This document shows, piece after piece, positions 3,245 to 39,342 of a stretch of 64,000 nt of DNA. Both the position numbers and the translations under genes were made by a program. Under the pieces are notes generated by a model that saw nothing but the letters and a program-made list of their open reading frames with translations, did no database searches and was not told where the DNA came from. The stretch lies in sequence record AP018399.1; one strand, written 5' to 3'. How positions within the stretch are numbered: position 1 is the stretch's first letter; every line of letters begins with the position of its first letter.

Positions 3245-3288
3245 TTGACATTATAATTTAGTTGCTGTAAAATGGATGGCAGGCCGGG
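3245..3288 (+). repeat. dispersed promoter-GGATGGCAGGCCGGG element, copy 1
   Basis: TTGACA-17-TAAAAT-GGATGGCAGGCCGGG. Confidence 0.9.
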
Positions 3289-3337
3289 ACTACAGCGCGC
3301 GGACAAAAAGAAAGGGAGCCAATCGGCCCCCTTCCTG

Positions 3338-3574
3338 TTACACTGCCCCGATGTACTTGGGGGCGGGTTCCATGTTGTGGAATCCCAGCTTGATGATGGT
3401 ATGCTCTTTGTACTTGATGAAGTGGAAGATGAAGAACAGGCGGAAACAGATATCGCCTTCATCATCCACATTCCACTTGAAAAGCATGTGCGGAATGTGG
3501 TAGCGATTCCACGCCCACCAGTATTGCAGTTTGATGCGGGCCTTGTACCACAGCGCGCGAATCTTCCAGCGCAT
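3338..3574 (-). CDS. hypothetical aromatic-rich protein
   Basis: ORF coupled to the upstream stop and followed by a terminator. Confidence 0.55.
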   Translation of the reverse strand: MRWKIRALWYKARIKLQYWWAWNRYHIPHMLFKWNVDDEGDICFRLFFIFHFIKYKEHTIIKLGFHNMEPAPKYIGAV

Positions 3575-3575
3575 G

Positions 3576-4250
3576 TTAGACCCCCATCGCTTCGCGGACT
3601 TCGGCGGGCAGCAGGGCGAAGCGTTCGGCGTTGATTGCATTGTAATCGTAACCGTCTTCCTTCGTGTCCATCCAATGCAGCATCCACATGAAGGGAGTTT
3701 TCGGCCACTTCTTGACGAATTCGCCGGTTTCCTTCATCCGGGTCAGCTTGTACACGAACGCTTCGCGGATATCGTAGTCGCCGACGAACGTGTAATCGCC
3801 GCGTTCGCCTTCGCAGCCACCGGAACAGCCGGACGGGTAGACGTTGTTTTGGTCGTTCGCCTTCCATGCGAAATAGACCTTGCCCATGTTCAGCGACGTG
3901 GTGCGGTAGGTTTCCATCGTCAGCAGGGCCGACAGTTCCGGATTCCAGTAGATGCGCTTTTCCTCGTCGCTCGGCTCTTCCGTATCGTCCCACGGATTGC
4001 CCTTGAACGCGACGGTTGCCAGCAGTTGGAAGCCCTGAGCCTCCACGATGGCGACAGCCTCGGCGAAGGTGATGTTGTAGTGCGTATCACGGGCAGCGCT
4101 GAGAGCATTGCGCTTGAGTTCGTTGTGACGCATGGCGAGAGCGAGGCCCAGCAGGTTGCTTTCCTCGGTCCGACGCTCGCCGGTCAGGCGTTCGGCCACG
4201 TCGATGGGGTCGAAGTCGAGGATGGTTTCCAGCGTGCTATTCTGCGGCAT
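3576..4250 (-). CDS. hypothetical phage protein
   Basis: 224-aa ORF with its own promoter. Confidence 0.8.
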   Translation of the reverse strand: MPQNSTLETILDFDPIDVAERLTGERRTEESNLLGLALAMRHNELKRNALSAARDTHYNITFAEAVAIVEAQGFQLLATVAFKGNPWDDTEEPSDEEKRIYWNPELSALLTMETYRTTSLNMGKVYFAWKANDQNNVYPSGCSGGCEGERGDYTFVGDYDIREAFVYKLTRMKETGEFVKKWPKTPFMWMLHWMDTKEDGYDYNAINAERFALLPAEVREAMGV

Positions 4251-30281: not shown

Positions 30282-30390
30282 GGGAATGTAGCTCAGAGGA
30301 CAGAGCGCAGGGCGAGGAAGGGACTGGTTTTCCACCAGTAAACCCATCCAATCTCAGAAGTCAGTGGTTCGAATCCATTCATTCCCACCA
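30282..30390 (+). ncRNA. tRNA-like RNA with extended anticodon arm (109 nt)
   Basis: Acceptor GGGAATG/CATTCCC-ACCA, normal D and T arms, ~33 extra nt. Confidence 0.75.
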
Positions 30391-36245: not shown

Positions 36246-36560
36246 ATGAACGAAATCATCCAGAAGATGTTCCCCACTGGCACTCTCAATGGCCGTGGTG
36301 GTACCGAAGTGAACGGTCTGACCAAGGGCACGGTTCCGGCTGGTACCATTCTCAAGAGTGGACAGGACAAGTTCGACAACAAGGGCCGTCGTGAATTCTA
36401 CGCGGTCGAACTGGATGGGCATGTCGCGTACCTGCGAGTGTGCGAAGCATATCCGGGTAGTGGCTATGACGAATTCGCGGTTATACATCGCGTCGTCAAA
36501 GCCGAAGAGACGGAAGAAGTGAATGAAATTCTCAACACCGTTTCTCGTATGACCAGCTAA
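36246..36560 (+). CDS. hypothetical protein
   Basis: ORF with promoter. Confidence 0.65.
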   Translation: MNEIIQKMFPTGTLNGRGGTEVNGLTKGTVPAGTILKSGQDKFDNKGRREFYAVELDGHVAYLRVCEAYPGSGYDEFAVIHRVVKAEETEEVNEILNTVSRMTS

Positions 36561-36630
36561 AAAGTAGTTGACAAGTTCGATTTTTGTAGTAAAGTATCAA
36601 TCTCGGTGACGGCATAGAGGCCACTCACTG

Positions 36631-36660
36631 GTTCTTTAACAACTTGAGCGGAAACAAGTT
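36631..36660 (+). promoter_or_regulatory. boxA (GTTCTTTAACAA) plus hairpin AACTTG-AGCGGAAA-CAAGTT
   Basis: Matches the rrn/nut boxA consensus, downstream of TTGACA at 36568. Confidence 0.65.
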
Positions 36661-36851
36661 CATAGACTGAACATGCCTCGGTAGGTCAGTATGGTGGCAA
36701 CACCATCTGGGGATGAGGACATGCTAGGAACCAATATGCTTTGGATACGCAGTGGTCGTTCACTAGCCACGACTACGGTATACGCTATCAGCACACAATA
36801 TGCATTGAATGTGCGGCGATTTGAAAGCTAGAGGCGTGTTCAATCTATGAA
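36659..36851 (+). ncRNA. unknown ~190-nt structured RNA
   Basis: 21-bp terminal helix and an internal GNRA hairpin ATGGTG-GCAA-CACCAT. Confidence 0.6.
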
Positions 36852-36855
36852 TTTT

Positions 36856-36980
36856 TGGTAGGTAAGCAAGTGGGCAACGTAAGACGGCAATGGTGTAGGT
36901 ATCCGTGAGGTATCAGAGTACGGTTGAGTCTCCCAGAAACCGTTTCAACTTCGTGAGTTCGAATCTCACCCTACCAGCCA
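36856..36980 (+). ncRNA. tRNA-like RNA (Tyr-like body) with large central insertion
   Basis: TGGTAGG/CCTACCA-GCCA; T arm GTGAG-TTCGAAT-CTCAC. Confidence 0.7.
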
Positions 36981-36987
36981 ATTCTAT

Positions 36988-37052
36988 GCACAGGTTACTT
37001 GGAAGCATCCGGTTGCGCACCGTGATGGGTGGTTCGATACCACTTCTGTGCC
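36988..37052 (+). ncRNA. D-arm-reduced tRNA-like RNA (loop TTGCGCA)
   Basis: GCACAGG/TCTGTGC and a T arm; no CCA. Confidence 0.5.
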
Positions 37053-37066
37053 GCGATTCGTATAGT

Positions 37067-37213
37067 ATTCTGATGGCGAAATAGGTAGACGCGGGGGTCT
37101 AGGCCAATATGGAGAAGGGAGCTAAACATTCCCTCTGCTGCTCATGGTCGGAAACTGCTGTGAAAGCGTTGCAGCAAAACGCTGACCGTGTGGGTTCGAC
37201 TCCCACTCAGAAA
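37067..37213 (+). ncRNA. tRNA-like RNA (Leu-like body) with extended anticodon arm
   Basis: Leu-type D loop GGCGAAATAGGTAGACGC, V arm and T arm; ~60 extra nt. Confidence 0.65.
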
Positions 37214-37224
37214 TTACTATATAA

Positions 37225-37620
37225 CAGTATGGTCGTAATCCCTTTAAAATGAAGGGCGTTCGGACGCGGGTTCGATTCCCGCCACGTCCACCACATGCAT
37301 CTTATAGCCAGAACTGAATCTGGTAAGAGGTAGTCAGCCACATTGAACCTTTCAGTAGAGCGCTGACCTAAGTCGCATGTAGTAACCCGCTTTAGGGTGC
37401 AAGTGATGGGCGTGCCAAGGTTTCGACGGGCGAAGATAGTGGAGAAGGCGACTAGCCAGAGTAGGCTCTAAAACTAAAACCTAAAGTAACTGCCAACGCA
37501 AATACTTTCGATTACGCACTAGCTGCCTAATCCCAAGCACATCCAGCACTTGGTCACCGAACGCTGGGCAATAGCAGTCCTTGGACTGTCTATTGTGAAA
37601 CATCTTCTGGTTCAGCCAGC
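37225..37620 (+). ncRNA. ssrA: circularly permuted (two-piece) tmRNA; tag ANANTFDYALAA
   Basis: Acceptor piece ending CACGTCCACCA (37293) precedes the 5' GGGCGTG (37408); G3.U70; tag 37492-37530; outer ends approximate. Confidence 0.85.
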
Positions 37621-37637
37621 CTAGGCAAAAGACGCAT

Positions 37638-37727
37638 GGCGGTATGGCACTCCGCATACAGAGGGTGTATTCACAATATGCAGTTCGTTATTGAGAGGAA
37701 ATGTAGGTTCGATTCCTACGGTCGCCG
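37638..37727 (+). ncRNA. degenerate tRNA-like element
   Basis: T arm GTAGG-TTCGATT-CCTAC and weak acceptor GGCGGT/GGTCGCC. Confidence 0.35.
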
Positions 37728-37857
37728 CAGACCCCACTATGCTGGTCTGTGAAAAACAGTCGATATGGGTTAATATGGAAAACGCCTCTCATCTTTCAAA
37801 TAGGAGTTGACAATGAGCATTGTTTTTGCTACTATGTCGGCTTCTGTAACAAGCTAC

Positions 37858-38051
37858 GCCCTTGAGTAAGACAGTCAGGGAGTAAGCTCTTAATGTGAGC
37901 ATGGTCGCCCCCACCTTTTGATAGGCTAGCCGGGGAGAGGTTCGAATCCTCTAAGCACCGTTAGGCTGAGACGAAAGGACTACGTTGCGAAGCATTGCAC
38001 GCCAATTCCGGAAACGGCTGGTAGTGTTAGCATCCGACTACAAGGGCACCA
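37858..38051 (+). ncRNA. 194-nt tRNA-like RNA with ~88-nt insert between T arm and acceptor 3' strand
   Basis: GCCCTTG/CAAGGGC-ACCA; internal AGAGG-TTCGAAT-CCTCT. Confidence 0.65.
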
Positions 38052-38104
38052 AATTAGGTGTTGACAAACGAAGAAAGTATGGTAATATGTACTTCTTCAC
38101 CGGT

Positions 38105-38192
38105 AACCACTGACGATTGGCCCACCGCAAAAGGGCCGAAACAGAGAGACACAAGCGAGTTTACCTCCTTCCTCGCCGTCTCCTGTCTGGTT
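38105..38192 (+). ncRNA. hammerhead ribozyme-like RNA (type I), predicted cleavage after GUC at 38187
   Basis: CUGACGA, stem II GGCCC/GGGCC, GAAA, stem III ACAG/CTGT, stem I AACCA/TGGTT; extra UU after A9. Confidence 0.7.
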
Positions 38193-38214
38193 TGACAACT
38201 TGAGTGCGGAAACA

Positions 38215-38995
38215 ATCTCAAGGTGGAATAGCGTACAGTGATGTGCGTAAAGTGTGGCCCGCTCAGGCTGCGCACCATGCAAATGGCTCCATCAAACAAG
38301 CACCGACTCCGGGGCACGCCAAAAGTGTGTCACGGCCCTTGTGAAGAACCACGAGGGAACTTGGAAAAGGTGCCCGACAAGCTAGTCTTGGGACAACTGA
38401 GACAGTTTCCACCCGCAAAGTGGATTAGGGATGCAACACGGATACCAAGCACTAGTCAAGGTGTAGAACATAAGCATGAGGCTGCAACCAAGTGCGATGT
38501 TCAGTGAAGTGGGACTGTTTAACAGGCAGAACCGCATATACAATCCGAGTAGCCGCAAGCGAAAGGATACAGGGGCGTGTTGTATTTGGTACTTCAAAAG
38601 GGTATCGAGCAACGGCAACACACGTCCTGAGCAACAAAACAACTTCATAGGTTAATGAAATTAATTAAACGCAAAGTTGTTGCCGGTGCATGATGAAAGT
38701 GACGTAATGCTTGACACGCAAGTGAATCAAGCCATTCCGAGGCTCGCAAGGCAGAGGGGTGTTGTGGGAAAGTCGCACGTTTGGGGTCGAACCCTTTACT
38801 GCTCGCAAGGCAGGCGGTAGACAGAACCATGAATAGTCATGCACGACAGTGGAAATGCCACCACTTTAATCTAGGCCGTCATGGTTGCTACTCACATGAG
38901 TGAGTGGATAACGGTAGAAACTTCGCTCGCAAGCGGAGTATAATGACCGGAAAGGTAACCAATCAATGCTGTAATCTCAGGCAGGCTTTTCCAAT
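38215..38995 (+). ncRNA. giant ornate ncRNA, GOLLD-like (~780 nt)
   Basis: No credible ORF, many GNRA hairpins, tRNA context, GGCGTGTTGTA..CAAAAGG and GTAATCTCAG motifs recalled from GOLLD. Confidence 0.6.
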
Positions 38996-39052
38996 AAATT
39001 CAAGACCTTGCAGCTTTAAGCGCAATCACACTAAATAGATTTACATTTCTAT

Positions 39053-39138
39053 GCGGGTGTGGCCGAGTGGTCGATGGCACTAGTCTTCCAAACTAGACTC
39101 AGAAATGGGCGCGAGTTCGAATCTCGCCACCCGCTCCA
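39053..39138 (+). tRNA. tRNA-Gly(UCC) with long variable arm
   Basis: Loop CTTCCAA, U73, V arm CTCAGAAATGGG. Confidence 0.85.
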
Positions 39139-39263: not shown

Positions 39264-39342
39264 CGCGCGGTACAATCAATATCGGCAGATGGGCACCCTC
39301 ATAAGGTGTCGGTTGGGAGTTCAAGTCTCCCCTGCGCTACCA
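39264..39342 (+). tRNA. tRNA(CAU), initiator-like C1 mismatch
   Basis: C1.U72; lacks the three anticodon-stem G-C pairs. Confidence 0.75.

Follow-up and report, generated by a model that had tools for sequence, protein, structure and literature searches.

Xanthomonas jumbo phage XacN1, a lytic phage of Xanthomonas citri with a genome of 384,670 bp, carries a circularly permuted, two-piece gene for transfer-messenger RNA (tmRNA, ssrA). It is best explained as a functional gene of the betaproteobacterial type, in which the intervening segment (IVS) expected to be excised from between the two pieces is probably no mere spacer: its core appears to be an autonomous RNA motif conserved in phages. 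On the sequence evidence we put the probability of this reading at about 0.85. The window analysed here, 64,000 nucleotides (nt) long, comprises nt 1-64000 of record AP018399.1, so that positions are identical in window and record. It falls inside the left 66-kb direct terminal repeat of XacN1 and, since the tmRNA locus lies within this repeat, the gene is present in two copies per genome (two places matched in the record). The GenBank record has no annotation across 36560-39053; in the XacN1 genome paper tRNA genes were searched for by tRNAscan-SE only, and tmRNA is nowhere mentioned. Both tmRNAs and SmpB are known cargo of huge phages in general. An ARAGORN survey of 18,146 phage genomes (Buchholz et al. 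2022, PMC9004378) yielded 133 unique tmRNAs, 53 of them two-piece, and 50 of these 53 came from marine or aquatic samples. Table S1 of that study enters XacN1 as 'Permuted', soil, riboswitch 'none'; the gene received no further analysis and the phylogeny comprised marine lineages only. The permuted tmRNA call in XacN1 is already in the literature, as a bare call, and a phage two-piece tmRNA of the beta type is a known kind of gene. The new part is an IVS that holds an autonomous conserved RNA.

ARAGORN calls a permuted tmRNA (tmRNA*) at 37201-37621, with the tag ANANTFDYALAA. With the Rfam model RF04321 (tmRNA_permuted) the gene reaches 123.2 bits, where the gathering score is 47, in an alignment beginning at 37231. 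RF01850 (beta_tmRNA), the top-scoring model of its clan on the XacN1 gene, scores 107.8 bits against a gathering score of 84 and is matched over model positions 1-331, that is, over the full model with the post-tag hairpins included. The ARAGORN and Rfam matches to permuted tmRNA are far above chance. The gene and its intervening segment are laid out as follows.

37221-37293, + strand: acceptor piece; 5' boundary approximate (ARAGORN from 37201, RF04321 from 37231, RNA-library contig from 37221)
37231-37235 (GGUCG) and others, + strand: 3'-side strands of helix P2 in the acceptor piece, from sequence reading
37266-37282, + strand: T arm GCGGG/TTCGATT/CCCGC, from sequence reading
37283-37289, + strand: acceptor 3' strand CACGTCC, from sequence reading
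37290, + strand: discriminator A73
37291-37293, + strand: encoded CCA
37294-37407, + strand: IVS, 114 nt, presumably removed on maturation
37296-37303 with 37394-37401, + strand: IVS closing helix, from sequence, folding and family comparison
37298-37398, + strand: embedded copy of the pseudoknotted motif, ~97 nt (covariance model 80.8 bits, E 5e-23)
37304-37309 with 37388-37393, + strand: outer stem P1 of the motif, which stacks on and continues the IVS closing helix
37402-37407, + strand: unpaired leader AGTGAT, directly before the predicted mature 5' end
37408-37614, + strand: coding piece; 3' boundary approximate (ARAGORN, Rfam, sequence, RNA-library contigs)
37408-37414, + strand: acceptor 5' strand GGGCGTG
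37419-37427, + strand: D-loop analogue GGTTTCGAC, in the coding piece
reaching 37449-37453 (CGACU), + strand: 5'-side strands of P2
37454-37467, + strand: PK1-like hairpin, AGCC (37454-37457) with GGCU (37464-37467)
37492-37530, + strand: tag reading frame ANANTFDYALAA*, resume codon GCC at 37492, stop TAA at 37528-37530 (ARAGORN and sequence)
37533-37568, + strand: post-tag H-type pseudoknot, corresponding to an RF01850 hairpin
37533-37537 with 37549-37553, + strand: pseudoknot stem A, CCAAG with CTTGG
37542-37547 with 37563-37568, + strand: pseudoknot stem B, TCCAGC with GCTGGG
37554-37562, + strand: post-tag pseudoknot loop TCACCGAAC
37569-37595, + strand: terminal hairpin of the coding piece, CAATAGCAGTCC / GGACTGTCTATTG, which is the last RF01850 hairpin

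The original prediction, made from the letters of the window alone, had placed the T arm and the acceptor 3' strand with its CCA (to 37293) upstream of the acceptor 5' strand GGGCGTG (37408). Reading of the sequence confirms this permuted order, and covariation supports the pairing. The two strands pair 7/7, with G37410.T37287 as G3.U70, just as had been claimed, and the segment between them, given as ~114 nt, measures exactly 114 nt. Its proposed closure by TGCATC/GGTGCA is real and grows to a helix of ~8 bp. All tRNA-like-domain (TLD) features of RF04321 are present (acceptor stem, G3.U70, A73, CCA, T-loop consensus and the GGUUUCGAC D-loop analogue, within 37266-37293 and 37408-37427), as are its tag features, namely an Ala resume codon, a hydrophobic C-terminus and a stop. 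The tag was located correctly; its codons are GCC AAC GCA AAT ACT TTC GAT TAC GCA CTA GCT GCC TAA. A standard one-piece tmRNA (RF00023) was rejected, the sole CACGYCC-NCCA that adjoins a T arm being the upstream one at 37283-37293. Use of a second, downstream acceptor 3' end had been named as one finding that would speak against permutation, and no downstream T arm precedes a strand complementary to GGGCGTG. In particular, the T arm at 37703 is followed by GGTCGCC, which is unable to pair with GGGCGTG, and a relaxed ARAGORN 'tmRNAp' call at 37255-37728, likewise discarded, lacks a complementary 3' strand.

Complete permuted tmRNA genes, unannotated in GenBank, were found in five other isolated phages.

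Xoo-sp13 (Xanthomonas jumbo phage, MN047793): 3276-3619 of the extracted locus
Stenotrophomonas phage QDWS359 (ON331942): 1447-1864 of the extracted locus
Xanthomonas phage JGB6 (OQ436456): 1455-1863 of the extracted locus
Xanthomonas phage Rb1 (PQ569993): 1445-1873 of the extracted locus
Bordetella phage PHB04 (MF663786): 1455-1826 of the extracted locus

The genome sizes of QDWS359, JGB6, Rb1 and PHB04 are unrelated. Short blast matches in these four phages had been considered as attP copies of the 3' end of host ssrA, but are actually complete permuted genes; in QDWS359 and JGB6 an opposite-strand 'hypothetical protein' coding sequence (CDS) overlaps the RNA gene. The Xoo-sp13 orthologue is syntenic, lying between an amber-suppressor tRNA-Sup(CUA) and tRNA-Gly/Leu/Glu. 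It is missed by ARAGORN but recovered by Rfam with 65.7 bits; the RF01850 threshold is not reached. The XacN1 and Xoo-sp13 genes are only ~56-73% identical, with the structure intact: the acceptor stem is compensated (GGGCCTG/CAGGTCC in Xoo-sp13 versus GGGCGTG/CACGTCC in XacN1), and so are pseudoknot stem B (CTAGC/GCTAG versus CCAGC/GCTGG) and the terminal hairpin, which is retained with altered sequence. By manual reading, independent of any ARAGORN call, the Xoo-sp13 tag frame is open and ends ...MAA plus stop; tags of related phages end ALAA, IAA, LAA or AAA. Both stems of the post-tag pseudoknot covary in six or more phages, among them Xoo-sp13, QDWS359, JGB6, Rb1 and the loci L106 and L107.

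A pattern for the tRNA-like domain matched at least 120 contigs of IMG/VR, and ~80 of the matches listed have an ARAGORN-called permuted tmRNA. Family statistics were computed on 84 extracted permuted genes with 63 unique IVSs. The acceptor stem is GGGCCTG/CAGGTCC in 79 of the 84 genes; the three other variants (GGGCGTG/CACGTCC, GGGCATG/CATGTCC and GGGGCTG/CAGCTCC) are all fully compensated. Pair 5:68 is accordingly C-G in 79/84, A-U in one, and in XacN1 has the rare form G-C, while G3.U70 is constant across the 84 genes. The P2 helix that joins the two pieces is present throughout the family, and its distal part covaries (GGUCG/CGACU, GGCUG/CAGCC, GGUUG/CAACC). Compensatory changes support the predicted acceptor stem, inter-piece helix and post-tag pseudoknot. 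The exact pseudoknot block of XacN1, used as a pattern, had no match in the viral and genome collections; a looser pattern hit one metagenome contig (L123), rejected as a chance match that lacks tmRNA features. A strict automated pseudoknot search anchored on the YACC loop succeeded in 15/71 versus 8/71 shuffles and is not family-wide. By inspection, the same topology occurs in the family with other loop sequences. ARAGORN and Rfam as two independent detectors, the Xoo-sp13 orthologue and the compensatory base changes thus agree on a circularly permuted two-piece tmRNA gene in a phage, as first proposed.

The published distribution of permuted ssrA comprises the Alphaproteobacteria, one betaproteobacterial group and one cyanobacterial group. 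A bacterial scan with the same pattern (one genome per species) gave, among the matches listed, mostly tRNA-Ala genes and standard tmRNAs; only five of those listed were permuted genes, all from Cupriavidus. A prophage origin of the latter was rejected, their neighbours being ordinary chromosomal genes; they were taken as the bacterial reference for the beta type. Stenotrophomonas and Bordetella phages have the beta-type two-piece gene too, and the RF01850 threshold is passed by JGB6 as well as by several relatives on viral contigs. Carriage by XacN1 falls outside the betaproteobacterial two-piece clade, a point of taxonomic distribution that leaves the RNA itself untouched. The maximum-likelihood tree built from the mature-piece sequences has little resolution, and for this reason we claim no donor lineage. 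In this tree the five Xanthomonas/Stenotrophomonas phage genes group with a few viral contigs, separately from the Cupriavidus clade; within the phage group the pseudoknot loop is GUCACCGAAC or a near variant.

The original prediction took the gene form either as a hint to host lineage or as an independent permutation, and neither idea held up. The host, X. citri, belongs to a genus outside the three permuted-ssrA clades, so that the gene form would be misleading as a host marker. The same fact, together with the separation of the Xanthomonas/Stenotrophomonas phage genes from chromosomal Cupriavidus genes (support only 81/84), would suit a permutation of the one-piece ssrA of the Xanthomonas host within the phage lineage, which would make a fourth origin of two-piece tmRNA. 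We regard this as very improbable, given that RF01850 is the best model of its clan and scores above its gathering score, that Bordetella phage PHB04 carries the same kind of gene, and that XacN1 shares with ~80 viral-contig genes and with chromosomal Cupriavidus ssrA the break point, the closing hairpin, the TGAT leader, the inter-piece helix with its P2 motif AUGGYUG...CARCC and the post-tag pseudoknot. From these sequence features the XacN1 gene is classed as a member of a betaproteobacterial-type two-piece family abundant in viral contigs, and not as a fresh permutation. Hardly any easier to credit is a decaying, non-functional relic of a captured ssrA. The lack of annotation, two mismatches in P2, the missing second stem of PK1 and the absence of a reported phage SmpB might be read in this way, but the identity elements are intact (7/7 acceptor stem, G3.U70, A73, CCA, T loop, GGUUUCGAC), the tag frame is open and ends ALAA plus stop, and most differences of the Xoo-sp13 orthologue are compensatory or leave the structure unaltered. 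Also speaking against decay are an environmental relative of ~97% identity and the near-identical pieces present in RNA libraries (see below). The least probable of the three is a decoy role, of the sort suggested for the TLD-only gene of mycobacteriophage DS6A: instead of tagging, the RNA would mainly titrate the SmpB of the host or block its trans-translation. Phage TLD-only molecules do exist, a similar molecule strongly inhibits tmRNA, and XacN1 relies on host SmpB; a decoy, however, needs none of the complete tag frame with its C-terminal ALAA, the upstream in-frame-stop context and the post-tag structures, all of which are kept in XacN1, in Xoo-sp13 (with its ...MAA ending) and in the four other phages with ARAGORN-called tags.

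The second part of the main finding concerns the IVS. Its length of 114 nt is unremarkable within the family, where IVSs span 25-194 nt, plus one of 398 nt. An end-to-end closing helix is found in 59 of the 63 unique IVSs (mean -13.9 versus -5.3 kcal/mol for mismatched partners), and in the minimum-free-energy fold of the precursor this helix is stacked on the acceptor stem. The last four bases are TGAT in 57/84 genes and TAAT in 16/84 (73/84 together). Rfam finds no family inside the other long IVSs (144-194 nt; one of 398 nt).

The remark that the IVS would be long enough for an independent RNA proved fruitful: the core of the IVS, at the tip of the family-typical closing hairpin, is one copy of an RNA motif that is conserved separately in phages. 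The first lead was a blast match of 37310-37392 to the podovirus contig MW202713, which itself has no tRNA or tmRNA. Pattern scans and blast revealed copies in ~20 further viral contigs, in Pseudomonas phage Itty13, in Klebsiella phage RCIP0114 and in 5 of 5,426 complete E. coli genomes, where the motif is thus rare; in total, more than 25 phages and prophages without tmRNA carry it. Three pattern matches (L260, L267 and L270) were excluded as chance. A covariance model built from 21 copies was tested on four copies left out of it.

Pseudomonas phage Itty13, 2487-2584 of the locus: 80.4 bits
Klebsiella phage RCIP0114, 2492-2589 of the locus: 79.2 bits
E. coli prophage, NZ_AP027783 (locus L275), 3493-3592: 81.5 bits
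E. coli prophage, NZ_CP100996 (locus L276), 3493-3589: 76.2 bits

In the XacN1 window the model finds a single copy, whose 80.8 bits are within the range of the others. RefSeq has no annotation at the E. coli copies.

The motif folds into the outer stem P1, a central stem, a pseudoknot and a small 3' hairpin, with invariant blocks in between and ~35 invariant positions. In the pseudoknot, 5' ACUGA pairs with UCAGU in the loop of the central stem, and its variants are compensated (ACUGG/CCAG, AGGG/CCCU, GUGA/UCAC, ACAGG/CCUGU). The central stem, GUCAGC/GCUGAC in XacN1, occurs in 16 distinct complementary versions among 23 sequences. Pair statistics were taken over these 23 distinct sequences, with shuffles and slid partners as controls: 94.1% of the pair cells are standard versus 80.8% in shuffles (0/500 shuffles as high), 53 cells are doubly changed, i.e. 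compensated, versus 16.9 expected, and the covariation score is 0.406 versus 0.155 for shuffles and at most 0.158 with slid partners. Rfam 15 has no family for the motif: a 2.6-kb scan gave nothing at E<=1, the best match to the element alone at E<=10 had 11 bits, and no family matching the motif was found on MW202713. Its invariant strings had no occurrence in the literature searched. We are highly confident that an RNA family represented by this motif exists.

As a rule the motif sits in the late-operon leader, after antiterminator Q and ahead of genes for lysis or packaging. In RCIP0114 and in annotated lambdoid prophages, E. coli and Klebsiella ones included, it is flanked by the gene for the Q antiterminator (or a DUF1133 protein) on one side and by the holin/endolysin genes on the other. 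One E. coli copy is downstream of a promoter-like site and a strong, first terminator-like hairpin. In Itty13 it is upstream of the terminase genes terS/terL. Elsewhere the neighbours vary, with HNH endonucleases twice, and an open reading frame often starts 6-31 nt downstream. MW202713 also has a sub-threshold Rfam match to Betaproteobacteria-1 RNA, at 16-150 of locus L248 (28.8 bits versus a gathering score of 49.4), upstream of an antitermination protein gene. Our working guess is that the motif is an element of late transcripts that acts in cis on transcription or translation, or a stable small RNA. The ~35 invariant positions and the pseudoknot make it a candidate riboswitch, ribozyme or polymerase-modifying element.

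The presence of the motif in the tmRNA gene can be read in more than one way. It may be a passive hitch-hiker, a mobile or recombining RNA cassette in a permissive loop with no role for the tmRNA or for XacN1, and we give this somewhat less than an even chance. The motif is absent from the loci around the tmRNA genes of other phages, from the Xoo-sp13 IVS and from all 83 other permuted IVSs examined; its neighbours elsewhere are heterogeneous, HNH endonucleases included; and a relative with near-identical mature pieces has a different IVS. In that relative, known from an RNA-library contig, the acceptor piece is identical, the coding piece has one difference, and unrelated 175 nt replace ~110 nt of the IVS (37293-37404 compared), so that the IVS loop appears to be a hot spot for replacement. 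On the other hand, the XacN1 copy retains every invariant block and all helices at a score typical of the motif, which argues for continued selection on the RNA itself. A bolder reading is that the precursor yields three RNAs, RNase P and 3' trimming setting free the ~114-nt IVS with a functional copy of the motif; we entertain this tentatively and would not wager on it. If true, the permuted tmRNA gene doubles as an expression and processing vehicle for the motif RNA. More broadly, phage two-piece ssrA genes may carry small RNAs as cargo at the tips of their IVS hairpins.

As for expression, a soil DNA contig ~97% identical to XacN1 spans 36600-39000, with the whole locus retained. In two RNA libraries contigs fall only on the tmRNA pieces and on 38208-38980, leaving the spacers uncovered. 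On the coding piece they cover 37416-37564 (0 differences) and 37414-37533, and one contig comprises 37221-37293 (0 differences) plus 37404-37507. This evidence for expression is weak but consistent.

With a functional beta-type permuted ssrA as the preferred reading, maturation may be pictured as follows, largely by analogy. A single precursor would be transcribed within an array of tRNA and tRNA-like genes. Its upstream 3' strand (37283-37289) pairs with the downstream 5' strand (37408-37414), as sequence and covariation show, and folding and family comparison show the 114-nt IVS as a closed hairpin domain stacked on the acceptor stem. RNase P would cleave 5' of G37408, past the conserved TGAT leader, and 3' trimming would halt at the encoded CCA (37293). 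The likely products are an acceptor piece of ~65-73 nt and a coding piece of ~190-205 nt, which would stay joined through the acceptor stem and the P2 helices. Host AlaRS, guided by G3.U70 and A73, would charge the RNA, and host SmpB would bring it to stalled ribosomes. Translation would then resume at GCC 37492 and append ANANTFDYALAA, a canonical ...ALAA degradation tag directing proteolysis. Among the gene products of XacN1 are a peptidyl-tRNA hydrolase, a CCA-adding enzyme and enzymes for RNA repair.

Several points weigh against this reading. Of the pk1-like region claimed in the original prediction, the hairpin at 37454-37467 stood: it corresponds to a stem of the Rfam model and is compensated in Xoo-sp13 as GGUC/GACU. 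The second pseudoknot stem could not be established, as inspection of XacN1 and Xoo-sp13 gave no convincing candidate. Two pairs of P2 are marked as non-canonical by the covariance model. No SmpB is reported for XacN1, and function would therefore depend on compatibility with host SmpB. RNA-library contigs are no proof of transcription or processing, as DNA carry-over is possible. The presumed mature ends, alanylation and tagging are extrapolated from the sequence and the Caulobacter paradigm. Finally, the assumption of a standard-form ssrA in the host derives from the distribution published for permuted ssrA; in X. albilineans there is one tmRNA, and the locus is ordered ratA-smpB-ssrA.

The tmRNA gene is embedded in an array of degenerate tRNA-like elements.

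37067-37214, + strand: degenerate tRNA-like element directly upstream of the tmRNA gene; acceptor-like stem of 6 bp, insert of 73 nt, T arm at 37190 perfect; called by ARAGORN only with introns allowed
37615-37728, + strand: weaker tRNA-like element directly downstream of the tmRNA gene; T arm at 37703 perfect, 3' strand GGTCGCC
36893-36980, 36988-37052 and 37885-37960: further degenerate tRNA-like elements, with perfect T-arm hairpins at 36953 and 37936

Neither default ARAGORN nor the Rfam tRNA model calls any of this array; only relaxed ARAGORN does. The elements at 37067-37214 and 37615-37728 bracket the tmRNA gene exactly and, speculatively, could be processing punctuation that defines its outer ends. 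The soil relative has a 71-nt stretch (37886-37956), overlapping the element at 37885-37960, swapped for 75 other letters. Two Rfam tRNA matches elsewhere in the window, both without an ARAGORN call, are at 30282-30387 (106 nt, 45.6 bits, with room for an insert or intron) and at 39265-39337 (a marginal 31.3 bits). Further downstream, ~950 nt from the tmRNA gene, the full RF02032 model matches a GOLLD RNA at 38570-38983 with 227 bits; GenBank leaves it unannotated. Metatranscriptome contigs cover ~770 nt here (38208-38980) at a depth of up to several thousand, and the start of this coverage at ~38208 suggests a GOLLD RNA that reaches ~360 nt further upstream than the Rfam model. At 38061-38088 there is a sigma70-like site. 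Rfam gives no GOLLD match at the syntenic place in Xoo-sp13.

Phages unrelated to one another have the beta-type two-piece ssrA in circulation, and their hosts Xanthomonas, Stenotrophomonas and Bordetella are outside the two-piece clades; the gene form is therefore unusable for phage-host prediction. Phages are a plausible vehicle for the spread of the permuted form. At least six isolated phage genomes stand in GenBank without annotation of their permuted tmRNA, some with spurious 'hypothetical protein' CDSs over the gene. The IVS has, in addition, led to an RNA motif without a described family that stands first in the late operon, both in lambdoid prophages (E. coli, Klebsiella) and in Pseudomonas and environmental phages. 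In the genetically tractable lambdoid prophages it is directly testable.

Lambdoid phages have late-leader RNAs of their own, such as the '6S' transcript of lambda (PR'-tR'), and cis-acting antitermination RNAs such as HK022 put are known as well. In lambdoid prophages the motif takes the same position as these late leaders, downstream of Q and upstream of holin/endolysin genes. It differs from them in matching no sequence or family, in following the first terminator-like hairpin in the E. coli example, in its multi-stem pseudoknotted fold with ~35 invariant positions and in its occurrence in non-lambdoid contexts, including the XacN1 IVS.

Among two-piece tmRNAs, the closest counterpart is the betaproteobacterial type (RF01850, Cupriavidus ssrA), the 'third lineage' of Sharkady and Williams 2004, as cited in PMC9004378. 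XacN1 shares with it the order of acceptor 3' half, IVS and 5' half plus tag, a GGGC-type acceptor stem with G3.U70 and a CCA that is encoded. The P2 motif is common to both, as is a short tag of the ANDE.FALAA kind that ends ...ALAA; after the tag both have a pseudoknot, its loop of the YACC type, and then a terminal hairpin. Unlike the Cupriavidus gene, that of XacN1 resides in a lytic phage whose host genus is outside the two-piece clades and has an IVS of 114 versus 32 nt; the rare G5-C68 pair and the extra conserved RNA motif in the IVS also set it apart from the betaproteobacterial type. Methylophilales phage Melnitz and pelagimyophages (PMC9004378) are similar in that tRNA genes and a permuted ssrA occur together in a large lytic myophage, and Melnitz ssrA likewise has a second structured RNA built in, a glutamine riboswitch in the 3' domain. 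However, Melnitz ssrA is marine and of the alphaproteobacterial type, whereas that of XacN1 is from soil, of the beta type, and has its extra RNA inside the IVS. The mechanism outlined above is modelled on the two-piece tmRNA of Caulobacter (Keiler, Shapiro and Williams 2000, as cited in PMC9004378), for which it is validated that the precursor is cut into paired tRNA-like and mRNA-like pieces and that the RNA tags proteins. Caulobacter tmRNA belongs to the alpha lineage and differs in pseudoknot content, and the XacN1 gene is known from sequence alone. Finally, the mycobacteriophage Bxz1 group, Bacillus phage G and the TLD-only gene of DS6A (PMC4131195) are further cases of a ribosome-rescue RNA in large tRNA-rich phages; the Bxz1 group and phage G have the standard gene order and DS6A has no tag, whereas the XacN1 gene is permuted and has a tag.

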